From positions 140,150-204,149 of the IMG/VR virus record IMGVR_UViG_3300041402_000314: a stretch of 64,000 nucleotides of DNA; one strand, 5' to 3'. A program made the translations under genes and the position numbers. Under the pieces are notes generated by a model. The model saw nothing but the letters and a program-made list of their open reading frames with translations. It had not been told where the DNA came from and searched no databases. The number at the start of each line of letters is the position of its first letter. The stretch's first letter is position 1. This document shows, piece by piece, positions 5,714 to 62,145 of this stretch.

Positions 5714-6058
5714 TTATGAAGTAATTCTACCAGCTTTCGAAGCGTCTTCAGCGTATATACTGAGAGGAAAGTTAAACGATGCGTACCTATCTCTTTCGAC
5801 ACCCAGACCAAATGGTGGGAATCTCATTGCTTCGAGTTCATCCCTAGAAACGTATCCTAACTCAGGGAACCCTTGCCCAAGATCACAGAGACCGAAGAAC
5901 ATTCTGCTCTCCTCGTCATATTCCGTAATTAACCATGTACATGCTCCGCCACCGAAAAACTTAACTACTGGTATGAAGTCAGACTCCCCACCAGACTCTT
6001 GATTGATCTTAGAGTTCCTAACCAGCTTATCTTCGATTATCTTAGTCATTAGTTTCAT
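5714..6058 (-). CDS. DUF2958-family protein
   Basis: PVVKFFxxGACTWLITE...FFGLCDLGxGFPELGYVSxxEL...GLGVERD signature. Confidence 0.85.
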   Translation of the reverse strand: MKLMTKIIEDKLVRNSKINQESGGESDFIPVVKFFGGGACTWLITEYDEESRMFFGLCDLGQGFPELGYVSRDELEAMRFPPFGLGVERDRYASFNFPLSIYAEDASKAGRITS

Positions 6059-14670: not shown

Positions 14671-15227
14671 CGTTGCCTCGCTATGTCTATTAGGATTTGT
14701 GTAGGGTCTACCAGATAATCTGGTAGATGCTCACCAAGTTTCCAAGGTATACCAGTAGTCATATAGGATTTAAGAGCTAAGTGAAGCATAGTCGTAGGCC
14801 GACCCTTATCTGTTTTCAACACTCTTCTAACGTCACCTAGATATGTTCCAGTTACAACCCTATCTCCTATCTTTAACATCCTATCTATTTTTATTTCACC
14901 ATAACAGAATATACCAGACTCCCCTCTAATGTATATTCCTTCGGTCTCTTCCCACCAAGGACAATCAGCATTGGCTCCAGTGAAAGCCTCCATCAGAACT
15001 ACTGTACCGTCTTCAATAGAATATACTGGCGTATGCTCTGGACAATATAAATCTATTCCTTTATGGATATCATGTTTTCTATCGACTCCAAATGCGCCTA
15101 CATGACTATCTACAGGAATTTCTACCTCTTTCGTTATATCGATATCTTGGAAACTCATCGAATTTCCAGTAATACCCTTATATATCATATTTAGTGGAAA
15201 TGTCTTATTCATAAAACTCATCCTCAT
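14667..15227 (-). CDS. M23-family peptidase-like protein
   Basis: HKGIDL (HxxxD), PVYSIEDGTV, GDRVxTG; the HxH motif reads MLH. Confidence 0.75.
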   Translation of the reverse strand: MRMSFMNKTFPLNMIYKGITGNSMSFQDIDITKEVEIPVDSHVGAFGVDRKHDIHKGIDLYCPEHTPVYSIEDGTVVLMEAFTGANADCPWWEETEGIYIRGESGIFCYGEIKIDRMLKIGDRVVTGTYLGDVRRVLKTDKGRPTTMLHLALKSYMTTGIPWKLGEHLPDYLVDPTQILIDIARQR

Positions 15228-27193: not shown

Positions 27194-28438
27194 ATGGCAG
27201 AACATAAAATAACATATAAATTAAAGGGCATTAAACCGCCTTATGTTGGTGGAGAAATAGAAATTAATCCAACTGCGGTTGTTCAATTTTACTTCATAGA
27301 AAGTATAGAAAACATGTTTCTAACTGGTAAGATAGAAATAGAAGATATTGGAGGTCTCTTAGAAAAACTCCCATTGACAGGAGAAGAAACACTAGAAGTT
27401 ATTATAGAGCAAGACTTAAAAGGCGATACCGAAATAATTTCTCTAAAGACACTGGAATTTGAATTCTATAATATTGAATTGGGAATTACTGATAGAATTA
27501 AAACAACTAAGTATATATGTCATCTAGTGGAAAAAGGTTTTTTTGATTTTGTTAATAAGAGTTATAGTAAGTCGTATAAAGAGAAACACGTAAGCGATAT
27601 AGTTGAAGATATATGTAAAAATCAACTCGGTTTAGAAAGCGATCAATATGATGTAGAAGATACTTCAGATAAAGTAAATTTTATAATTCCGTATTGGAAA
27701 CCTCTTACTTCATTGAAATATTTTACGAGGATTGCAAGGAGAAAACAAAGCCCAACTGAAAGCGGTTATCTTTTTTACTCTACTACAGGCGATGAGGATA
27801 CTGAGAATCCTATCAAAAAATTCGTTTCTTTCGCTACTCTATTAGAAGTAAAACCAGATACAAGTGCAGAAAAAAAATATTACTTTAAGAAGAATAGTAT
27901 CAATCCTAATTTTATCAATAACTTTCAAGATGTTAAAAATCCTAATTTTAAGAATAGAAAGATACTGAAAGATGGTGTTTCTGGAAAGAAATATTACGGT
28001 GTGGATTTTGTAACTGATAAGACACTCTATACCGTTGAAAAGAAATATAGTGAATTTGTAGCCAGTGCTAAAATGTCTGGGAATGTATCATATCTTTCTA
28101 TTGGATTAGATGACGTGGATAGCGAAGTAGAATTTATGGGCTATCCAGATAGAAAATTAATAGAGGCACGACAAGATTTTAGATTTAGAATGTCTTTAGA
28201 GAGCTTTAATAAAAGAGAAGTTCTTGTTGATGGAGCATTGAATAGAAATTGCGGAAAGACCATATATGTCGAACAGGCAACCGATAATCCAGATGAGCTA
28301 CATAATGTCGAACATTCTGGTACATGGTTAATAAAAACTATTACTCATAGCTTCATGATAAAATCTTATGATCAGAAACTTGTAATATTAAAGGACGCTT
28401 ACGAGTCCACTGAAGTAGAAGGTCATGATAGTGTATAA
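27194..28438 (+). CDS. baseplate hub protein (gp27-like)
   Basis: ESI...FLTG.I...D, LPLTGEE, IPYW.P, YLFY, SG.WLI..ITH. Confidence 0.8.
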   Translation: MAEHKITYKLKGIKPPYVGGEIEINPTAVVQFYFIESIENMFLTGKIEIEDIGGLLEKLPLTGEETLEVIIEQDLKGDTEIISLKTLEFEFYNIELGITDRIKTTKYICHLVEKGFFDFVNKSYSKSYKEKHVSDIVEDICKNQLGLESDQYDVEDTSDKVNFIIPYWKPLTSLKYFTRIARRKQSPTESGYLFYSTTGDEDTENPIKKFVSFATLLEVKPDTSAEKKYYFKKNSINPNFINNFQDVKNPNFKNRKILKDGVSGKKYYGVDFVTDKTLYTVEKKYSEFVASAKMSGNVSYLSIGLDDVDSEVEFMGYPDRKLIEARQDFRFRMSLESFNKREVLVDGALNRNCGKTIYVEQATDNPDELHNVEHSGTWLIKTITHSFMIKSYDQKLVILKDAYESTEVEGHDSV

Positions 28439-50317: not shown

Positions 50318-51328
50318 ATGAAAAGAGCATTAGTATGTGGTGCTGGTGGATTCATCGGTAGCCATCTAGTAAAAAGACTTAAGAATGAAGGATATTGGGT
50401 TAGGGGTGTTGACCTCAAACAACCAGAATTCTCGGAGACTGAAGCAGATGATTTTTATGTCGGTGATCTTAGAAATCCTAATGTCTGTAGCACTGTTCTA
50501 CATTATAATACAACTCATGAGAAGGACTTCGATGAGGTCTATCAATTAGCTGCTGATATGGGCGGAGCTGGTTTCGTATTCTCTGGAGAAAATGATGCTG
50601 ATATCATGCATAACTCAGCACTGATCAATCTCAATATACTTAATCTGCACCATAAGTTTAAAAAGATTTTCTATAGTAGCTCGGCTTGTATGTATCCAGA
50701 ACATAATCAGCTCGACCCAGACAATCCTAATTGTACTGAGGATTCGGCATATCCAGCTAATCCAGATAGTGAATATGGATGGGAAAAACTATTCAGCGAA
50801 AGACTCTTCCTCGCATATGCTAGAAATAAAGGTGTAGATGTTAGAATAGCGAGATTCCATAATATCTTCGGTGAAGAGGGTACATGGGATGGTGGACGTG
50901 AGAAAGCTCCTGCTGCTCTATGTAGAAAGATCATAAAAACATATGGCGGAATCGAGATGTGGGGAGATGGTAAACAGACACGCTCATTCCTATATATCGA
51001 TGAGTGTGTTGAAGGAATAAGACGTTTAATGGAATCTGATTTCAAAGAACCTGTTAATATTGGTTCTGAGGAAATGGTATCTATTAAGGATTTTGCTATA
51101 CTGATAGCAACTATCGAGGATAAAGATATTGTGATTACTCATATAGACGGACCGATTGGTGTTGCTGGAAGGAATTCTGATAATACACTGATTCAGGAGA
51201 AGCTAGGTTGGAAGCCATCATTCCCATTGTTGTATGGAATTACGAAAACCTATTTCTGGATAAAAGAACAGGTACGTTTATCGGACATGGCGAAGGTAGA
51301 GATAGCTAGTGTGGATGAGAACGTATAA
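50318..51328 (+). CDS. GDP-mannose 3,5-epimerase-like NAD-dependent epimerase
   Basis: GAGGFIG, LAADMGG.GF, SSSACMYP, YGWEK, RFHNI.G, GGREKAPAA.CRK, WGDG.QTRSF. Confidence 0.9.
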   Translation: MKRALVCGAGGFIGSHLVKRLKNEGYWVRGVDLKQPEFSETEADDFYVGDLRNPNVCSTVLHYNTTHEKDFDEVYQLAADMGGAGFVFSGENDADIMHNSALINLNILNLHHKFKKIFYSSSACMYPEHNQLDPDNPNCTEDSAYPANPDSEYGWEKLFSERLFLAYARNKGVDVRIARFHNIFGEEGTWDGGREKAPAALCRKIIKTYGGIEMWGDGKQTRSFLYIDECVEGIRRLMESDFKEPVNIGSEEMVSIKDFAILIATIEDKDIVITHIDGPIGVAGRNSDNTLIQEKLGWKPSFPLLYGITKTYFWIKEQVRLSDMAKVEIASVDENV

Positions 51329-52936: not shown

Positions 52937-54004
52937 TTAAAATCCGAATATTTCGCGATATTTCTTAACGCCTGCTGTTTCAAGCCAATATTTATCTAGC
53001 CATTTCCTTTGCTTTTGAATTATCTCTTCTTTCTTTTGCTTATTCTGGAAGATATCAATAATAGTATCTCTATCAGTTTTCCAATCTCCACTAAAGAATA
53101 ATTGCGATTCTTTATAAGGTGTAAGTTTAGAACTTATAGATATAATATCAGCACTGGCATAGTCCAAATTTTTTATATTCGATTTGCATTGATTAAATGC
53201 ATTATTAAGTAATGGAGCTACACCAAAATCACAATTAAGTTCTTTTAATACCGTAGGGTATTGATACATGCTACCTATCCAGCCGGGCATTTCTATTTTG
53301 TCCTCGTATGGTTTTAACCAAGTTGGACATTCACGAATACCTAATATCACCCACTCGAATTCGTCTATGGTATTTTTTATTAGATCAAAAATAATACCAA
53401 AATCACCTTTATCATATTGATTAAAATGCGTGGGCGAACCAGCGTAAAGGATTCTAGGCTTTTTATTCTCTTTCTTTATGAAATCATACGGCCTATACAT
53501 ATACTTAGCTAAATAGTTAGGCACTATTTTAACCTTACAGGAACCGCCGAATGCCTCTATTTTCTTCTTTAATGGATATGTGGAGACAGTAAAGATATCA
53601 ACTAAATTAGTTACTTTCTTCAAATTCTCTACTGAATGAGGGTCATTGTAAGTCTTTGACGCAAAGTTATAATTAGGTACTTCTCCGATAAGATCATCCA
53701 GATCATATATTATTTTATAATCTACTTGAGGTGATTTCTCTTTAATTTCACGAACTAATTCAATAAATTGTAAATGATGATCGGTAGTCTGTCTTTGGAA
53801 ATGGATAACCTTTATTTTTGGAAAAAGTCTATCTGGTATATACATCCTACTAGATACTATACCTTCATATAATTTCTTTCTGGAATGGGCAAATTGTGAA
53901 TTTAACTCGTTGTTAGGAATAATCGTTCTAAGTTGTCCGCAACCTGCGAAATCGGATTGGAATTGATATGTTAAACATGGGTCTTCGACTTTCTCTTTAT
54001 TCAT
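52937..54004 (-). CDS. GT-B glycosyltransferase
   Basis: GCG..R...P, FQR, YDLDD, TVST..L, VPN, GS.TH, APL..N.FN.CKS.IK. Confidence 0.85.
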   Translation of the reverse strand: MNKEKVEDPCLTYQFQSDFAGCGQLRTIIPNNELNSQFAHSRKKLYEGIVSSRMYIPDRLFPKIKVIHFQRQTTDHHLQFIELVREIKEKSPQVDYKIIYDLDDLIGEVPNYNFASKTYNDPHSVENLKKVTNLVDIFTVSTYPLKKKIEAFGGSCKVKIVPNYLAKYMYRPYDFIKKENKKPRILYAGSPTHFNQYDKGDFGIIFDLIKNTIDEFEWVILGIRECPTWLKPYEDKIEMPGWIGSMYQYPTVLKELNCDFGVAPLLNNAFNQCKSNIKNLDYASADIISISSKLTPYKESQLFFSGDWKTDRDTIIDIFQNKQKKEEIIQKQRKWLDKYWLETAGVKKYREIFGF

Positions 54005-55419: not shown

Positions 55420-55456
55420 AAAAAGGCGGTGGGATAAGTGACTAGCCTATCCCACC
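55420..55456 (-). terminator. intrinsic terminator
   Basis: GGTGGGATA/TATCCCACC hairpin and U-tract. Confidence 0.7.
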
Positions 55457-55523
55457 AATAATAAAGGAGGTGTTACACTATGAACTAAGAATATCACTGA
55501 CATTCTCAGGAATAGCCTTATTG

Positions 55524-55913
55524 TTACAGACTTTCTGCCATTTTAGTAAGCTCGTCAACACTCTTACCTTGAAGTTCCTCATTCTGCTTGGTATTGATGA
55601 TACTCAAGATTGTCGCTTTCTTGGTTTTGTTTTCCGCAGCCTTTTCAGCTACATCGGCCTCATCCATCTTGACCTTGATGATATGCTTAACAATATCAAA
55701 CTTTAGTTCAAGAACAGCATTTTTGGCGGTTCTCTTCTGAACAAAGCTTTCCTCGCCACTTTCCTTAACAGCCTTACTTAAACTCTTGGCTACGGTATCG
55801 AGGTCAAAACCATTTCTACTTGTGAGCTTTAAGTCCCACAAATCCTCTACAGTAATCAATCCTTTTGTGGTATCGAACCTTAATTGTAACCTACTCGCTT
55901 TTTCAAAATTCAT
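55524..55913 (-). CDS. conserved large-phage hypothetical protein
   Basis: FEKA.R..LRF....G..TVEDLWDL.L, ESF, LKF.IV..II..K. Confidence 0.8.
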   Translation of the reverse strand: MNFEKASRLQLRFDTTKGLITVEDLWDLKLTSRNGFDLDTVAKSLSKAVKESGEESFVQKRTAKNAVLELKFDIVKHIIKVKMDEADVAEKAAENKTKKATILSIINTKQNEELQGKSVDELTKMAESL

Positions 55914-55939
55914 AATATATCTCCTTTATTTTTAATGTT

Positions 55940-56374
55940 TTATATATTTTTCCACGTTATATTTCTAACTACTTTATGTATTAAATTGAGACTAACCCCA
56001 TACTTTTTTGCTATATCTAATTGCGGTTCTCCATCAGAAAATAATTTTCTTATTTGTATGACTTTTTCTTCATTTAATTTTGTTGACCTTTTATTACGTG
56101 CCTGATTATTAACAGAAGCCCAAATACAATTTTCTGGAGAATAACCAAGTGAGTTATCAATACGATCTACGGAATGTTTTATTGTAGGTCTTCGACCCAT
56201 ATCTCACAAAAATGATGTATATGAATTTCGCCATCTATCACATACCTTTATACCTCTTTCTCCATAATATGAGTACATAGGATTATTGGGATTATTACAT
56301 CTCTGAATCATTCCAGCCCACGATCTATATTCAATCGTTTGTGGCCTTTTAGCCTCTCCATGCCTCTCAAACAT
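55940..56374 (-). pseudogene. HNH homing endonuclease with an in-frame TGA
   Basis: W..M..RC.NP...Y..YG.RGI.VC.RW..S...FL*DMG.RP...S.DRIDN..GY.P.NC.WA...Q..N; TGA at 56204-56206. Confidence 0.85.
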
Positions 56375-56388
56375 TATTTGTGTTATTT

Positions 56389-58398
56389 TTAAAAGTTAAT
56401 TTTTATTGTACGGTTGAAACTTCCACCTACCTTACATAAAACATGACTCTTTTGTGTAGATGAGAATCCCAAACCGCTTAGTTGATCGTCTGATTTCTCG
56501 GTTTTCATCTTAGAACCAAGTACCTCAAATACTTTCCTGTGGTCTCTCAGTCCTTCATCAAGGAATTCATTAAAGAATCCTCTGGCCTTACTATCGTTTT
56601 TACATCCATCGAGGATAAAGAACCAGTGTTTGTTACCTGTCTTTTTTCCGTCCCAATGATTAGGTGAATTCATAATCATGGAAACTTTCCTGAATTTCTG
56701 GGTTGGTATATCCCATACTTCCTTAGATGCCTGAGTCGATGGTAATGACTTGATGAATTTGATTCCTGTCTTATGGGAATACTCGAAGGTAGCTACCGCC
56801 ACATTACTACGATTTGCTACTCTCTTATCGTAATGGAATGTATGGATAACACCATCAAATTCAATTTCGACATCAAAACCAACATCCTTTGTTTCTCTTT
56901 GAGAGTAGTTATTGACATAGATTTCATATTTACCCTCTTCCATCTTGGCTTTATTAGCCCATGTGATGTTTTCTACAGCACTTCTTGATGTACCAGAACC
57001 AGCATTCATATCAACATCTAGTTTTCCGCCTGTTGAATGTGAATGTTTACTACCATAATAAATGTGATTCCCATTAGGCTCTTTGCAGTGAATATCAAGG
57101 TCATCATGATTAAACCATGACAATGAAGCCCTGAGATCGCCAGTTACGTTTCCACCAGCTCTCTTCACACGTTCCTTGATGGAATCTGCGACTTCTCCAG
57201 TATAAGCCCATGAGAAGTTATTATCCCATTTGAAGATATGTTTAGAATCTTCATGTGCTGGAGCTATAAGACTCATCAAGTTATTAACTTGACTGTTTTC
57301 AAACATCAACTCGATACTATCAGCCTTTGGTAGTATTTTTTCAAAGAAAGTATCGGCATCAACCTCATCAACCTTCTTTAGACTCGCTGTTTTTACAGGC
57401 GCATCTTCTACCATTTCATCAAAGACATTCATTGCCTTTTTGACAGACCGATCAGCGAAGAGAACATTGGTAATTGAAATATCTTTTGCTACAGCATAAC
57501 GTCTCTGTAATGAATCACCGATACCAAGCTCTTCAACCTTCTTCTGAGCGTTTCTAATCATGGACTGAGTAACAAGAGCGGTAGTACGCTTATAATTGGT
57601 TGGAGCAACCTTTGATTCGAAGCTCTTCACTGCTTTATCAAGCTCCACACCGTCAGATATATCAGTCATCAATGTTCCGATTACAGAATTTCTCATCCTA
57701 GATGCGCCACCAAGAGTAGCAGAAGCAAGCCAACAATAGTTGTCCTTCTCTTCTTCATCTTCAATGGCATCGAATTTAGCCTTGTGAGTCTGGAGCAATT
57801 CTACAGTTGATTTATGCTCCTCTCCTCTATATATTGACTTCTGTTCAATAAGCTCAAGAACAGTTTCGATAGCTTCAGAAGAAATCTCTACTAAGCCACG
57901 CTTAAATACCTCTTTACCGCTGAAAGCTTTTGAAGTGGCTGTTCCGATATCAACTCCGCTCTTTACGAACTCCATTGGAAGTTCGATATAGAAATGTTCC
58001 CACTTTTTCAAACCGTTATCATTCATTTCATGGTTGAAGTCAGTTCCGACTTTTGACTCTCTATGAATGAAAATATTGCGTATTTTCGCAGATGTTACCA
58101 GTTCCGCCATCGCATCGGCAACAACTTGATAATGTCCACCTATCATAACATCCCAGATAGACACTTTCCTGTTATCGACAATAGCTACCATACTACCACA
58201 AGCCCTAATGAACTGCTTGCAACACTGGCAATCATGTTCGGTACGCTCACGTAAGATAGGATTACTACCTTCTGGAAAGCTATTAAGATAAGTATCCCAG
58301 ATAACATCTTTATCGATGTCAGTCTTGAATAACTTACCTCCTTTCATAGTTTTGAATTGTGCTTGTAGTGCTGTTTTGAACTTGTTAAAATCAGTCAT
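56389..58398 (-). CDS. conserved large-phage protein with YfaP/DUF2135-like domain
   Basis: HDCQCC..F; SLSW.N.DDLD.H..EP.G..IY...G.LDVD.N...VENI.W...G.Y...V.NY. Confidence 0.8.
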   Translation of the reverse strand: MTDFNKFKTALQAQFKTMKGGKLFKTDIDKDVIWDTYLNSFPEGSNPILRERTEHDCQCCKQFIRACGSMVAIVDNRKVSIWDVMIGGHYQVVADAMAELVTSAKIRNIFIHRESKVGTDFNHEMNDNGLKKWEHFYIELPMEFVKSGVDIGTATSKAFSGKEVFKRGLVEISSEAIETVLELIEQKSIYRGEEHKSTVELLQTHKAKFDAIEDEEEKDNYCWLASATLGGASRMRNSVIGTLMTDISDGVELDKAVKSFESKVAPTNYKRTTALVTQSMIRNAQKKVEELGIGDSLQRRYAVAKDISITNVLFADRSVKKAMNVFDEMVEDAPVKTASLKKVDEVDADTFFEKILPKADSIELMFENSQVNNLMSLIAPAHEDSKHIFKWDNNFSWAYTGEVADSIKERVKRAGGNVTGDLRASLSWFNHDDLDIHCKEPNGNHIYYGSKHSHSTGGKLDVDMNAGSGTSRSAVENITWANKAKMEEGKYEIYVNNYSQRETKDVGFDVEIEFDGVIHTFHYDKRVANRSNVAVATFEYSHKTGIKFIKSLPSTQASKEVWDIPTQKFRKVSMIMNSPNHWDGKKTGNKHWFFILDGCKNDSKARGFFNEFLDEGLRDHRKVFEVLGSKMKTEKSDDQLSGLGFSSTQKSHVLCKVGGSFNRTIKINF

Positions 58399-58429
58399 TT
58401 TTACTCCTCCCTTATACTTTATTCAAAAA

Positions 58430-58504
58430 TGGTGTAGTGAACTGGATTTGATACCAATATCGCCCAAGCTGGTGCAAGGGAGTTCTAACTTAAACTACCA
58501 CTAC
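58430..58504 (-). ncRNA. tRNA-like RNA 1 (degenerate anticodon arm)
   Basis: GUAGUGG/UCACUAC-A-CCA acceptor, GUUU/GAAC D stem, AUUGG-UAUCAAAU-CCAGU T arm. Confidence 0.75.
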
Positions 58505-58511
58505 AAATTTG

Positions 58512-58658
58512 TTTAACTGCTTATTGTGAGAGAGGGCTTCAACAACTGGTTACTAATCGAGGCTTTCACCAGTGAATCCTATTTGCACAAAGCCTCTATA
58601 GCGACTAAGACTTCAAGTGTTATATTCGTCTAACACTCTCTCCCAATAAATAGTTAAA
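58512..58658 (-). ncRNA. structured RNA A (long terminal stem, possible pseudoknot)
   Basis: ~23-bp imperfect terminal stem; AGUGUUA/UAACACU and GAGGCUUU/AAAGCCUC hairpins; ACUGGU/ACCAGU pairing. Confidence 0.6.
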
Positions 58659-58730
58659 TGGTGTGGGAAGTTGGACTTGATACCAACATCGCTCGGTATT
58701 CTCCGACATCTTAACTTAGACGACTCCCAC
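58659..58730 (-). ncRNA. tRNA-like RNA 2 (short anticodon arm)
   Basis: GUGGGAG/UUCCCAC-A-CCA acceptor, GUCU/AGAU D stem, UCGG-AGAAUA-CCGA, GUUGG-UAUCAAGU-CCAAC T arm. Confidence 0.75.
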
Positions 58731-58740
58731 ATAAAACTAA

Positions 58741-58872
58741 TGGATAGTTGGTTCGGAAGCTTTTTTGAATTATAATCCTCGCCAATAAACTCGGATTCGG
58801 CTTTCATTAATCACTTGGTATTCTACAGTCGTAACCGATTGAACCCTAAGTGTTTCCTCTTCCAACTACCCA
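58741..58872 (-). ncRNA. structured RNA B
   Basis: UGGGUAGUUGG/CCAACUAUCCA terminal stem; CACUU/AAGUG and AAUCC/GGAUU stems; follows promoter and boxA. Confidence 0.6.
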
Positions 58873-58881
58873 AATCAAATT

Positions 58882-58937
58882 TTTAAAGAACTTTTACTTT
58901 ATGATACTATTATAACAAATTCAGTTTCGTATGTCAA
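58882..58937 (-). promoter_or_regulatory. sigma70 promoter with boxA-like element
   Basis: TTGACA-17-TATAAT (58909-58937) then GTTCTTTAAA. Confidence 0.85.
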
Positions 58938-58951
58938 GCTTTATTTTAAAA

Positions 58952-59120
58952 TAATTAGTGGTGTGCTATTACGCCAAAGGGAACAGGGAACAGTAACCCA
59001 AATTTACGCCTCTATACTGTTTCTTCCTTGGAGGTTCGCTGTTACGGTACGCTTCTTAATACAACATAAGAACCCACTCTTTAAAAGATGGCTGCTTCCA
59101 AGCCAACCTCCCACTAATCA
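58952..59120 (-). ncRNA. 23S rRNA L11-binding domain (H43-H44) mimic with ~100-nt insertion
   Basis: GGAGGUUGGCUUGGAAGCAGCCAUCUUUUAAAGAGU ... GCGUAAUAGCACAC closed by AUUAGUGG/CCACUAAU. Confidence 0.85.
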
Positions 59121-59121
59121 A

Positions 59122-59186
59122 TTCAAAGAACTTTTATTACTTTTACTTTATGATACTATTATAACAAATTCGATTCTGGTTGTCAA
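59122..59186 (-). promoter_or_regulatory. sigma70 promoter with boxA-like element
   Basis: TTGACA-17-TATAAT (59158-59186) then GTTCTTTGAA; 32 nt identical to 58891-58922. Confidence 0.85.
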
Positions 59187-59194
59187 GTAAAATC

Positions 59195-60127
59195 TTATAA
59201 TAATTTTTCTATAGTTAATTTTCTATATTCATAGTAAGGAATTCGTATTAACCGTATATTATTATTTTTACAATATTCATCTTTTAATTTATCATTTTCT
59301 AGTTGTTTCAAAAATCTTTTTTGCCCACCAAAATATTTTATTGGTTTGTAATGCTGCTGTCCATCATACTCTATCATATGTGATATAGTATTACTACCAA
59401 AGATAGCAAAATCAAACATTAATTTCTTTTTATTTTTTAAATCTCCAAAAGAATATTGCGTTTCATATCTAATTTTATTTTCATCGAGAAGTTTTTTAAT
59501 CTTTTTTTCGCCCTTACTAAAATTACAATATATACACCCACGACTACGTAATGATCTTGCTTCCTTCTTCTCTCCACAATTTCCACATATGACACACTTA
59601 TACGCGATTGGCATGTTACCACTAATATATTCAGATGTCAATTCTATAGTATTGTTGTGTTCTATATTTATTTCTTCAAGAAACTGAGGATGCTTTTTTC
59701 TAACTTTTTTTGTCTGTGCTTCTCTACCACACTTAGAACAACCAAACCCCTGTTTTAAATATGTTGGCTTTGCTCTCCACGTGTGACGGCATATTTTACA
59801 CTTAATCTTTATATATTCATTACACCCCGTATAATCATCTATAAATTCTATCTTACTTTTTATATTATCGCCAAGTCTATCCATATATTTTTCGGTATCA
59901 AGATTCCATTTTACAGTATCTTTTGCTTTTTTTAATCCGCAAGCGGGACACCCACATCCTTTACTCTTGGTTAAAGTTGATGCAATAGGATTCCAAACAG
60001 TAGTACATTTGGTACACTTAACTTTTATTCTATCTCTACCTGTTACATATATTGTTAAAAACTTATAGATATTTCCATGAATTCTTATTACTTTTTGTTT
60101 AAATTCTTTATGTGTTAGCTTTCGCAT
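59195..60127 (-). CDS. free-standing endonuclease: three Zn-ribbon repeats plus Vsr/DUF559-like domain
   Basis: repeated Y......I..KCxxC...W.......GCxxC; SKGE, FDF, IEYDG.QHY, D..K..YC, LIRIPY. Confidence 0.85.
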   Translation of the reverse strand: MRKLTHKEFKQKVIRIHGNIYKFLTIYVTGRDRIKVKCTKCTTVWNPIASTLTKSKGCGCPACGLKKAKDTVKWNLDTEKYMDRLGDNIKSKIEFIDDYTGCNEYIKIKCKICRHTWRAKPTYLKQGFGCSKCGREAQTKKVRKKHPQFLEEINIEHNNTIELTSEYISGNMPIAYKCVICGNCGEKKEARSLRSRGCIYCNFSKGEKKIKKLLDENKIRYETQYSFGDLKNKKKLMFDFAIFGSNTISHMIEYDGQQHYKPIKYFGGQKRFLKQLENDKLKDEYCKNNNIRLIRIPYYEYRKLTIEKLL

Positions 60128-60181
60128 AGTTTAGATATCACAATCCATATTTTATTCTCTCCCTATCATTAACGGTTATTC

Positions 60182-60212
60182 TGAACAGTAACCTCCGACA
60201 CGTTACTGTTCA
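60182..60212. repeat. 11-bp inverted repeat upstream of the endonuclease gene
   Basis: TGAACAGTAAC-9nt-GTTACTGTTCA. Confidence 0.7.
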
Positions 60213-60258
60213 TTTTCTTTGTTAATTATGTATCTATAATGACATATGAGGTTTCTCC

Positions 60259-61242
60259 TTAAAATATTTTATCAATGAGTGTAGTAAGATAAGAGTCATC
60301 CAATTTCCAATCAGGCTCATCAGTTCTTTTCTTATCTATCGCACTAATCACTTCCGCAAAATATGCAGAATCGACACCCACTAGCTGATCTCTCAGAACT
60401 TCGACACTCTCTAAATCGAGTTTGCTTACTTGAAAACACATTTTAAAATACTGTCCAGCATTTATCTTCCATCCTCGTTGGATGAACTTTCTAGTTCGGA
60501 TGATAGAGGCTAGTGGGTATTTAGAACCGTTATATTTCAATTCCTTAGTGAGAGTACATTCCAAGGCATCTGCATTCACATGAACTTCCCTATCACTAGA
60601 CAACCAATAATTAGTACAATGAACGAAGTCATAGTTCTCATGTATCTCTTCAGGTTCACCATAAAAGCGTATAACGAGCTGTATATCATTACTTAAGGTG
60701 ATAGCATTGCTGGACAAGAATACTGGCCTGTATGCGTCTTCTGAGCCGTCTAACTGGTCTAATTCTTTAGCTCCAATATCATCTGCTTCAGAAATCATTA
60801 AGTCTGGAGTGGTTGCTAGAGTTTTCACTTTAGTATCTTCCAATACTTCAGTGGCAGCATCCAGATAATCGGTTCCTTTTTGTTGATCTAAGGTTTCGAA
60901 ATATCGATAAGTTCCTTCTTTATCGCCTTCACTAACCACACCAGCCGATTGAACTTTAATGGCTATTCTGCCGTTAGTATCCGTTACAAGAGCGGTCAAT
61001 TTATTGGGGTGTCTTTTAGCAAAATCTTTAGCATAATATTTCGCCACCTCTAAACATGTTTCTTTATTGGTGAAGTAATAATCATAGTCATTTACCTGTT
61101 CTCCCTGAAACATAGATACTATGGCTCCACCAGTGATGATAGAATTCTCATTTACGAGTCTTCTTACCTTCTCATCAGTAATCGAGGCTATAAATTCCTT
61201 ATGTTTTGCGAGAAGATTTTTCTCAATTCTTTTTCTATTCAT
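60259..61242 (-). CDS. Pol-beta-superfamily nucleotidyltransferase-like protein
   Basis: ITGGAI......VNDYDYYF, NAITL, QL, YDFVHC, R..KF..RG. Confidence 0.75.
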   Translation of the reverse strand: MNRKRIEKNLLAKHKEFIASITDEKVRRLVNENSIITGGAIVSMFQGEQVNDYDYYFTNKETCLEVAKYYAKDFAKRHPNKLTALVTDTNGRIAIKVQSAGVVSEGDKEGTYRYFETLDQQKGTDYLDAATEVLEDTKVKTLATTPDLMISEADDIGAKELDQLDGSEDAYRPVFLSSNAITLSNDIQLVIRFYGEPEEIHENYDFVHCTNYWLSSDREVHVNADALECTLTKELKYNGSKYPLASIIRTRKFIQRGWKINAGQYFKMCFQVSKLDLESVEVLRDQLVGVDSAYFAEVISAIDKKRTDEPDWKLDDSYLTTLIDKIF

Positions 61243-61254
61243 TCGTTAAACTCC

Positions 61255-62145
61255 TTAACTGTTATAATTTTCAATGACGTTTTGAATATCCTTCAGTGCT
61301 TGAGTAGCCTTATCAGGATTAACCACACATTTATCTAAAGAACCATAATACTCTTCAAGGCAGTTTAGAAGTAAATTCTTGATAGCTCCCTCATCAGGAG
61401 AATGGGGCAGCTTAGAATTAAGATACAAAGTTTCTAATTCAGCTTCTTTCTTTTGAAAATAATTTTTAATATCATCAATAGACCATTCGCCCTTTCTGAT
61501 GGCTTTCAACTGTTCTCGATTCCTTTCTAAATCTAAATCCCCTTCCATCATAATTTGTTCCACTTCTCCGAGAAGACGTGGAACGTGATAAGCAAATTTA
61601 GTGTCAAATCCATGACGGTCTACTAAATCCTTTCGCTTTCCTGCTTTGGGTTTTTTAATTTCCATTTTATGTAATTGACTATAACTATAACCTTTGAAGC
61701 GATGCCACGCTCCTTTATGAAGAAAATCCTTTCGTTTCTCTCTAATCATATTACCTATTTTAGTTGAATGTGTAATACATCTAATAGGGACGAAGAGAGC
61801 ATCTATAACATTAGGATTATTATCCATACAAAGTTGAAAGAACTTAATAATGGAAAAAACTTGAAAATCGTATTCCTTTTCTCCGTCTTGCGACTTCACA
61901 TGATGTTCTTGATAGGTGTCAAATCTTTTTATCTGCCTTCCGAAACCTTGAATTTCTCCATTGAGATGTGGAAAAATCATATCTTTATGTGGGATACATA
62001 CTCCGTATACATCTACATCAGAGGTATCATTAGAAACCCCATACGCAAAACTACCCATAATAACTTCATATACCATGCTATTAGGCAACCATTTAGGAGG
62101 ACTAATTAGTTTTTGTTTATCCAACTTTTGTACATAACTACTCAT
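61255..62145 (-). CDS. predicted nucleotidyltransferase (YcgL/RlaP-like)
   Basis: GS.AYG....SD.D..G, NNPN...L, GY...Q, G.DTK..YH..RL. Confidence 0.88.
   Translation of the reverse strand: MSSYVQKLDKQKLISPPKWLPNSMVYEVIMGSFAYGVSNDTSDVDVYGVCIPHKDMIFPHLNGEIQGFGRQIKRFDTYQEHHVKSQDGEKEYDFQVFSIIKFFQLCMDNNPNVIDALFVPIRCITHSTKIGNMIREKRKDFLHKGAWHRFKGYSYSQLHKMEIKKPKAGKRKDLVDRHGFDTKFAYHVPRLLGEVEQIMMEGDLDLERNREQLKAIRKGEWSIDDIKNYFQKKEAELETLYLNSKLPHSPDEGAIKNLLLNCLEEYYGSLDKCVVNPDKATQALKDIQNVIENYNS

Follow-up and report, generated by a model that had tools for sequence, protein, structure and literature searches.

Mimicry of ribosomal RNA (rRNA) by the mRNA leaders of ribosomal proteins (r-proteins) and the carriage of tRNAs by phages are both textbook subjects; the non-coding RNAs of phage tRNA clusters, such as T4 species 1/2, GOLLD and ROOL, are probably matured by the tRNA-processing machinery, and their function has been explored only recently, if at all. 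Here we describe RNA1, a small RNA encoded in the last 64 kb (64,000 nucleotides; hereafter the window) of the 204,149-bp IMG/VR record IMGVR_UViG_3300041402_000314, which resembles the GTPase-associated centre (GAC) of 23S rRNA. What appears to be new is that a phage should encode a copy of a functional centre of the ribosome as an RNA of its own, behind a strong promoter.

The record (35% G+C; CheckV completeness 89%) originates from a marine-sediment metagenome, and partial relatives are present in cold-seep metagenomes. The interval considered, window positions 55,524 to 62,145, is an accessory region composed, as a mosaic, of independent modules and belongs to a jumbo phage of ~204 kb from marine sediment. 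Positions are those of the window, except where the prefix G000 denotes coordinates of the record. The explanation of the whole that we favour, with moderate confidence, is that RNA1 is a trans-acting mimic of the GAC, with uL11 as its primary ligand, and that two tRNA-like elements beside it serve as processing punctuation.

RNA1 and its family

RNA1 lies on the minus strand, in a non-coding gap and behind a promoter of its own:

58399-59194, minus strand: non-coding gap of 796 nt, holding two near-identical promoters
59158..59186, minus strand: promoter P1 (TTGACA, 17-nt spacer, TG.TATAAT), matching the sigma70 consensus at 12/12 positions with an extended -10, upstream of RNA1
58953..59119, minus strand: RNA1, a split mimic of the 23S rRNA GTPase-associated centre, identified by 23S match, Rfam LSU match and family covariation

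Promoters of the P1 class number 23 in the whole phage genome, several of them within the tRNA region. A blastn search of RNA1 against 5,426 E. coli genomes returned 23S rRNA as the sole target, over 38 nt at 89.5% identity, and 14 nt of the 3′ half of RNA1 match the neighbouring rRNA segment, collinear with the first match and ~100 nt further on. The Rfam LSU model aligns to window positions 59067-59110 through model positions 1097-1144 (E 2.6e-7; 26.6 bits against a cut-off of 50). Since the RefSeq annotation of E. coli 23S rRNA is 18 nt short, its annotated positions 1043-1080 correspond to canonical ~1051-1088; anchoring canonical numbering on the A1067 loop, we take the 5′ half of RNA1 to be ~1051-1088 and the 3′ half to be ~1090-1108.

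Judged by sequence, RNA1 is thus a free-standing and complete 58-nt uL11/thiostrepton-binding domain (~1051-1108), with a closing helix (59119-59111 paired with 58961-58953), H43 (59109-59085) and H44 (58974-58965). An extra helix is inserted between A1088 and the H44 strand; this arm spans 59078-58976, a 91-nt insert included. The flanks of RNA1 are unrelated to rRNA, no contiguous rRNA being found beyond the 58-nt domain, and they pair as a closing helix of 9-10 bp whose sequence is unrelated to that of rRNA helix 42. When the whole RNA cluster was compared with GenBank phages by blastn, the RNA1 core alone was matched. No gene for uL11 or bL12 is present in the phage genome.

Two motifs mark the family, a 5′ closing strand plus H43 hairpin (loop GGCUURGAAGCAGCC) and a 3′ element (YUUWRGCGUANNAGCACAC) after which comes a strand able to pair with the 5′ end; RNA1 carries both (59119-59085 and 58981-58953, respectively). 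A 5′-half search pattern was found in 10, then 19, IMG/VR contigs and a 3′-half pattern in at least 118 IMG/VR phage contigs, 78 of which have a recognisable H43 half upstream, separated by inserts of 43-510 nt; a few of the pattern-only matches are probably false. The split arrangement was first found in pf16, Astolliot and Aeromonas 4_4572, within tRNA clusters, and both halves have been verified in these three cultured phages as well as in XacN1 and GAP32. The 5′ half was additionally found by BLAST in Milchi, UNO-G1W1, Pd_22F, RSP15, ME3 and Vibrio 2.275.O. Among 185,579 species-representative prokaryote genomes, just 14 contigs, mostly from metagenome-assembled genomes (MAGs), contain a pattern of this kind; the nine that were checked carry no rRNA gene, five of them having tRNA arrays and one a tmRNA. 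Two MAG contigs, L183 (4017-4040 and 5225-5248) and L191 (982-1005), hold GAC-mimic RNAs in phage-like tRNA arrays; among the MAG arrays, one contains two copies of the mimic and another adjoins a tmRNA gene.

The structure of the family is upheld by covariation, three of its four helices covarying. In the closing helix, each of the four Watson-Crick pair types is represented among 67 distinct members: the pair 1051:1108 is GC in 18, UA in 17, AU in 13 and CG in 11. Within H43, the pair 1058:1080 is UA in 22 members, GC in 17, AU in 10 and CG in 2. In a 24-member alignment, 92.9% of cells are paired under the named structure, as against 76% in shuffles, and the covariation score is 0.451, as against 0.125 for shuffles (none of 500 reaching it) and at most 0.153 for slid partners; compensatory double changes occur in 12 of the 23 pairs. 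Little or no variation is seen in the H43 loop, at U1060, G1071, C1072 and A1088, in the H44 pairs or over most of the H44 loop; some members vary at 1067/1068 and at H44 loop positions 1096/1097.

These data bear directly on the possibility that RNA1 is a non-functional scrap of a 23S gene, an rRNA intervening sequence or an intron, brought in, for example, by a homing endonuclease. The high identity of its core to rRNA, the splitting of the rRNA-like sequence by an insertion and the homing endonuclease genes that adjoin RNA1 would each be expected of such a remnant. The covariation, however, contradicts it: only the autonomous 58-nt domain is present, and its new closing helix covaries across more than 60 phages through four Watson-Crick types. 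Moreover, RNA1 has its own consensus promoter, the family recurs in the tRNA arrays of unrelated phages, and the bacterial matches that were checked lie outside rRNA genes. We therefore regard an origin as debris as highly improbable.

The family is phage-specific, and its members are normally found within tRNA arrays. Among 127 loci with the 3′ motif, tRNAs are present in 85, the nearest lying within 1 kb in 70 and within 300 nt in 57, always on the same strand as the GAC RNA. For RNA1 itself, tRNA-like units follow 220-460 nt downstream, and the 28 true tRNAs of the phage would lie ~10 kb off if the contig ends join. A recurrent protein neighbour was not found: all-against-all clustering of the open reading frames (ORFs) within ~3 kb of the GAC RNA gave a largest cluster covering 7 of 128 loci. 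In XacN1 (L194; record 150.2-150.6 kb), the family member lies directly downstream of an annotated 2′-5′ RNA ligase (LigT-type) gene, a setting of RNA repair. In a 208-kb relative (G004; L176, reverse complement ~1530-2000), the GAC-mimic RNA is followed by ~470 nt, apparently non-coding, whose end resembles the T arm and acceptor strand of a tRNA or tmRNA; no gene of either kind is called there by ARAGORN. The family is absent from Rfam 15, and no description was found in the literature, coverage of which was incomplete; it is apparently undescribed, an earlier description being possible.

Neighbouring RNAs and protein genes

Downstream of RNA1, a second promoter is followed by two structured RNAs in alternation with two tRNA-like elements (tl2 and tl1), the second promoter near-identical to the first:

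58909..58937, minus strand: promoter P2, near-identical to P1 (12/12 sigma70 consensus, extended -10)
58741..58872, minus strand: RNA2, orphan structured RNA, its multibranch core closed by an 11-bp helix (from folding)
58659..58730, minus strand: tl2, cloverleaf with a 6-nt 'anticodon' loop and an encoded ACCA end (from fold and compensatory changes)
58520..58650, minus strand: RNA3, orphan structured RNA, its branched core closed by a long helix (from folding)
58430..58504, minus strand: tl1, anticodon arm replaced by a hairpin with a 4-nt loop, ACCA end (from fold and compensatory changes)
G000 14862-14932 (L193:63-133), minus strand: third tRNA-like paralogue, in the true tRNA region, with the same 8-nt T loop and ACCA end

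The two tRNA-like elements are non-canonical and are not canonical tRNAs. Both have a 7-bp acceptor stem, a D arm and a T arm whose loop (UAUCAARU) is unusual in having 8 nt; neither is called by ARAGORN (0 in the window) or by the Rfam tRNA model RF00005 at E<=10. At Rfam gathering thresholds the window gives no match, and the cluster searched at E<=10 gives chance matches to U7 and snoR35 only. Compensatory changes among the three paralogues fall at 8 pairs, and double changes preserve pairing at five of the seven acceptor pairs and at two T-stem pairs; the anticodon region is unconserved. Contigs of the cold-seep relatives cover tl1, RNA3, tl2 and RNA2 at ~86-90% identity and show further compensatory changes, from G58726-C58667 to U-A in tl2 and from A58502-U58436 to G-C in tl1, together with two changes from G.U to G-C.

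RNA2 (predicted fold with minimum free energy -38.5 kcal/mol, z -3.2; 1/200 shuffles as good) and RNA3 (-35.7 kcal/mol, z -2.0; 5/200 shuffles as good) have no relatives in Rfam, among GenBank phages (BLAST) or in the fetched loci; nhmmer searches of all fetched loci with RNA2, RNA3, tl1 and tl2 likewise gave no relatives beyond the phage's own genome. Among the substitutions listed for the cold-seep relatives, those in RNA2 all fall at predicted unpaired positions. We also considered whether RNA2, RNA3 and 70-odd inserts of the RNA1 family imitate rRNA centres of other kinds, the sarcin-ricin loop for example, and rejected this; word-7 blastn against the E. coli rrn operon gave scattered, chance-level matches only.

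No terminator-like site lies between tl1 and the start codon of the next gene, in agreement with an earlier sequence-only reading of this DNA, and none is found downstream of P2 before 55457. P2 therefore probably co-transcribes RNA2, tl2, RNA3, tl1 and the two genes that follow, encoding proteins of 669 and 129 amino acids. The sequence-only reading had placed the RNA cluster between these two genes and a pair of nucleotidyltransferase (NTase) genes; all of these features are present as described, on the minus strand. Two homing-endonuclease insertions had gone unmentioned. The remainder of the interval, in the direction of transcription, reads as follows:

61255..62145, minus strand: RlaP-family Pol-beta nucleotidyltransferase, 296 amino acids (Pfam PF10127 E 6e-20; phrog_388)
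60259..61242, minus strand: Gad2-family NTase-fold protein, 327 amino acids (motif GGAI...NDYDYYF; phrog_4400)
59195..60127, minus strand: HNH/treble-clef homing endonuclease, intact, 310 amino acids (phrog_559 E 2e-64; Pfam DUF4379 zinc finger)
56389..58398, minus strand: DUF8224 / phrog_1735 protein, 669 amino acids (phrog_1735 E 2e-279; ESM Atlas PF26675)
55940..56374, minus strand: broken HNH homing endonuclease, two consecutive ORFs (phrog_3377 positions 11-55 and 58-101)
55524..55913, minus strand: phrog_2018 protein, 129 amino acids (phrog_2018 E 2e-43)
55427..55457, minus strand: intrinsic terminator closing the transcription unit, a 12-bp stem then a T-run, after the 129-amino-acid gene

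The 669-amino-acid gene is preceded by a strong Shine-Dalgarno sequence, and homologues of its product are found in 543 phage records. The label 'YfaP-like', previously given to this protein, is not sustained, the match to YfaP/DUF2135 (PF09906) being sub-threshold (15.5 bits against a cut-off of 22; E 0.019; 18 residues) and the Atlas placing the protein in DUF8224; one homologue carries the label COG4676 in a GenBank record. Its AlphaFold2 model (predicted local distance difference test 82.5) contains a TerD-like beta-sandwich at residues 420-553 (2qz7, Z 8.9), and fold search gave no clear match for the remainder. Neither profile scans nor fold search identified an RNA-binding domain in the 669- or 129-amino-acid protein, and a TROVE domain is absent from all proteins scanned, the larger of the two included. 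A complex prediction for the two proteins scored 0.00, which speaks neither for nor against binding.

That the two genes form a conserved pair, as had been proposed, is borne out: a homologue of the smaller lies directly downstream of that of the larger in 36 of 38 IMG/VR loci (40-65% identity in the larger protein), and the order is kept in pf16, Kashira and Vibrio phage 1.101.O. In relatives the gap between them is mostly 10-100 nt; here the broken HNH gene parts them. The intact HNH gene, a selfish insertion, sits between the Gad2-like gene and P1, and so parts the NTase genes from the RNAs.

Assignment of the first NTase to the RlaP family is secure at 72.4 bits against a cut-off of 23 (PF10127), with the motif GSFAYG...SDVDV that the sequence-only reading had recognised as GS.AYG..SD.D. 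Homologues are found in 753 phage records. The family takes its name from adjacency to an RNA ligase gene. Here RlaP (G000 201.4-202.3 kb) is not beside one, RtcB lying at 65.4-66.5 kb and an Rnl2-like ligase at 27.8-28.4 kb. RlaP proteins add one or two nucleotides onto damaged RNA 3′ ends (PMC12776372) and are frequent in large phages (PMC7824862).

For the second NTase, the predicted motif (GGAI..DYD) and fold hold; the protein is related to the anti-Gabija protein Gad2, and not to a known RNA-end enzyme. An ESM Atlas search of the 327-amino-acid protein (score 0.99; 237/256 features) returned top clusters that are all PF26128 Gad2, and BLASTP against the annotated Gad2 of SPbetaL6 gave collinear matches at residues 19-63 (E 9e-8) and 187-290 (E 3e-10), spanning the NTase motif and the following domain and covering just the N-terminal half of Gad2. 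There was no match in our local copy of Pfam, which itself lacks PF26128. Compared with Gad2 of SPbeta-like phages, the window protein has a homologous N-terminal NTase domain with the GGAI...ND.D.YF motif; it is shorter (327 as against 400 amino acids), carries an insert of ~120 residues and lacks the C-terminal ~200 residues of Gad2. Gad2 itself has an NTase fold and inhibits Gabija, a defence system (bioRxiv 10.1101/2023.05.01.538930); the window protein is a candidate anti-defence protein. Searches of the interval's proteins with PADLOC and NCBIfam and against sequences in the PDB returned nothing useful.

The sequence-only reading had suggested that the four proteins process, repair or bind the clustered RNAs as a single ribonucleoprotein that protects translation. 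Several observations would suit such an assembly: all genes and RNAs point the same way, the 669/129 pair is probably transcribed together with the RNAs from P2, and RlaP works on RNA 3′ ends (PMC12776372). Parallels are also found elsewhere. In Vibrio phage 1.101.O, the Gad2-like gene lies directly before the 669/129 pair, without the RNAs, and is the sole close parallel to the arrangement described here; locus L096 has the 669/129 pair, 20 tRNAs and a GAC RNA in series; and RlaP-like genes occur within a few kb of the GAC RNA in loci L092, L147 and L169, that of L169 being inside a tRNA array which also holds the GAC RNA.

Across phages, however, the four genes and the RNAs occur largely independently. 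Within 6 kb of the 38 loci with the 669-amino-acid protein, there is no Gad2-like gene, HNH gene or RNA1 motif, and one RlaP, a weak match on the opposite strand. Conversely, a homologue of that protein is missing from all five GAC-RNA phage genomes examined for it, three of them 100% complete, and just one of five large phages with the 669/129 pair has a GAC RNA, at a distance of 12 kb. Among the 127 loci with the 3′ motif, the 669-amino-acid protein occurs in 3, RlaP in 3 and the Gad2-like protein in none, and in XacN1 and GAP32 the GAC RNA lies more than 100 kb from the NTase homologues. Homing endonucleases break both junctions in the window, and no RNA-binding domain is detected in either protein of the pair. 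Gene adjacency in this window is thus no evidence of a shared complex, and a single ribonucleoprotein is improbable; the modules rather tend to share the same kind of neighbourhood. The wider translation theme stays plausible, since besides the RNA1 mimic the phage encodes 28 tRNAs, RtcB and an Rnl2-like ligase.

A few further features lie outside these modules. The Rnl2-like ligase gene (G000 27768-28361, minus strand) heads the tRNA region and RtcB is at G000 65441-66469 (plus strand), RlaP being far from both. Within the array of 28 tRNAs, outside the window, ARAGORN labels a tRNA with anticodon CUA as 'tRNA-Pyl' (G000 5928-6001, minus strand); it resembles an amber suppressor and could point to read-through or recoding of TAG. 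Just downstream of the island are genes for a nucleotide-sugar epimerase (window 50318-51328, plus strand) and a glycosyltransferase (52937-54004, minus strand).

Possible roles of RNA1

RNA1 would most likely function as a decoy or sponge for a ligand of the GTPase-associated centre, with host uL11 as the best-supported candidate. In the outline that we propose, RNA1 would be transcribed from P1 at tRNA-like levels and act in trans, titrating whatever recognises the GTPase-associated centre. Its primary ligand would be host uL11, possibly along with the stalk proteins, because all RNA determinants of the uL11-binding domain are kept and no phage protein partner is conserved nearby. The consequence may be interference with uL11-dependent processes, such as RelA activation and factor recruitment; alternatively, ribosomes may be shielded from agents aimed at the centre. 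P2 would yield a polycistronic precursor containing RNA2, tl2, RNA3, tl1 and the 669/129 mRNA, in which tl1 and tl2 would act as punctuation for RNase P and 3′-end processing, releasing RNA2 and RNA3 and trimming the leader of the 669/129 mRNA; it is also possible that they serve as decoys, mimicking the acceptor and T arms. RlaP and the Gad2-like protein would be separate RNA-repair and counter-defence genes, located upstream by chance.

A different role for RNA1 would be that of a substrate decoy, drawing off an effector that modifies or cleaves the GTPase-associated centre (a Tre23-like ADP-ribosyltransferase, an RNase or a methyltransferase) and thereby sparing ribosomes. The bacterial-conflict toxin Tre23 ADP-ribosylates H44 of 23S rRNA, targeting 1095-1098 within a minimal fragment, C1043-C1123, which is essentially the part copied by RNA1 (PMC8661411). 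The near-invariance in the family of the H43 loop and of the H44 loop GUAAUA would be consistent with a substrate mimic, as would the lack of a conserved phage protein partner and the setting in tRNA arrays, with Gad2-like and RlaP genes here and a 2′-5′ RNA ligase gene in XacN1. A parallel may be seen in the tRNAs with which phages replace, or compete against, those that defence nucleases attack. Nonetheless, we know of no anti-phage system directed against this rRNA domain, and none was found in the literature search; some 10^4 ribosomes would have to be outcompeted, and the variation at 1067/1068 and 1096/1097 is odd for a strict substrate mimic. We consider a substrate decoy less likely than a uL11 sponge, though a close rival to it.

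Several observations weigh against the uL11-centred explanation as a whole. RNA1 has G at window position 59099, the equivalent of A1067, where ~90% of the family and rRNA have A; A1067 is the nucleotide of thiostrepton resistance and of factor and thiopeptide contacts. The inserted arm leaves where H43 and H44 meet, and might change or prevent the binding of uL11. A sub-motif of the insert, CACCCCG-NNNN-YGGUAAGG, occurs in 29 of 78 members (for example L013, L005, L008 and L085) and is missing from the window copy, which suggests a second ligand in many members and sub-families of inserts. The search patterns fixed parts of H44, so that its invariance is partly imposed by the search. The structures of RNA2 and RNA3 are predictions from single-sequence folding and from the substitutions listed for relatives, and the sequencing runs found to hold this DNA are all DNA metagenomes.

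More broadly, and tentatively, the tRNA arrays of large phages may hold an undescribed trans-acting RNA copy of the GTPase-associated centre, which captures uL11 or the stalk proteins, or decoys effectors aimed at this centre, a form of RNA-based counter-defence by rRNA mimicry to which the tRNA-like RNAs, RNA2 and RNA3 would add further mimics; we would put this forward as a conjecture rather than as the likelier case. If it is true, host translation would be reprogrammed or shielded, for example by blunting of the RelA-dependent stringent response or of a ribosome-targeting immune toxin. RNA1 in any case offers a handle on what the unexplained RNAs of phage tRNA islands do, and on whether phages manipulate the uL11/stalk region, with its bearing on GTPase activation of elongation factors, RelA signalling and thiopeptide action. 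Cultured carriers, namely pf16 (Pseudomonas putida), Aeromonas phage 4_4572, XacN1 and GAP32, allow experiments.

Comparison with described systems

RNA1 has all three helices of the 23S GTPase-associated centre (the closing helix, H43 and H44). Its H44 loop does not differ from that of the rRNA, its H43 loop does so only by A1067G, and the tertiary-contact residues and pairs U1060, G1071, C1072, A1088, G1091-C1100 and C1092-G1099 are present. It differs in being phage-encoded and free-standing with its own promoter, in the extension of the closing helix by sequence that is not rRNA-like and, with the rest of the family, in the helix of 43-510 nt following A1088, which turns the three-way junction into a four-way junction.

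Leaders of r-protein mRNAs, such as the L10(L12)4 leader of rplJL, are likewise extra-ribosomal RNAs that imitate an r-protein site at the stalk base. These leaders, however, are cis-regulatory elements of cellular operons and usually loose structural mimics, whereas RNA1 stands alone, is near-identical to the rRNA domain and has no r-protein gene after it. As described, T4 species 1/2, GOLLD and ROOL resemble the RNAs of the window in being non-coding RNAs in or near tRNA clusters; the window RNAs have no Rfam match to GOLLD, ROOL or other Rfam families.

Y RNA/YrlA-Rsr (Ro) ribonucleoproteins also combine a structured RNA with a tRNA-like module and are linked in the literature to RNA-repair genes (PMC7824862). 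In the window, by contrast, there is neither a match to a Y RNA/YrlA model nor a TROVE domain, and the tRNA-like units each follow a closed RNA and are not set within a stem that binds Ro. With tRNA-like signals of the mascRNA type, tl1 and tl2 share an acceptor stem, a T arm, an encoded CCA, the lack of a decoding loop and a position 3′ of another RNA; peculiar to this phage lineage, in which a role as punctuation is predicted, are the T loop of 8 nt (UAUCAARU) and the existence of three paralogues.

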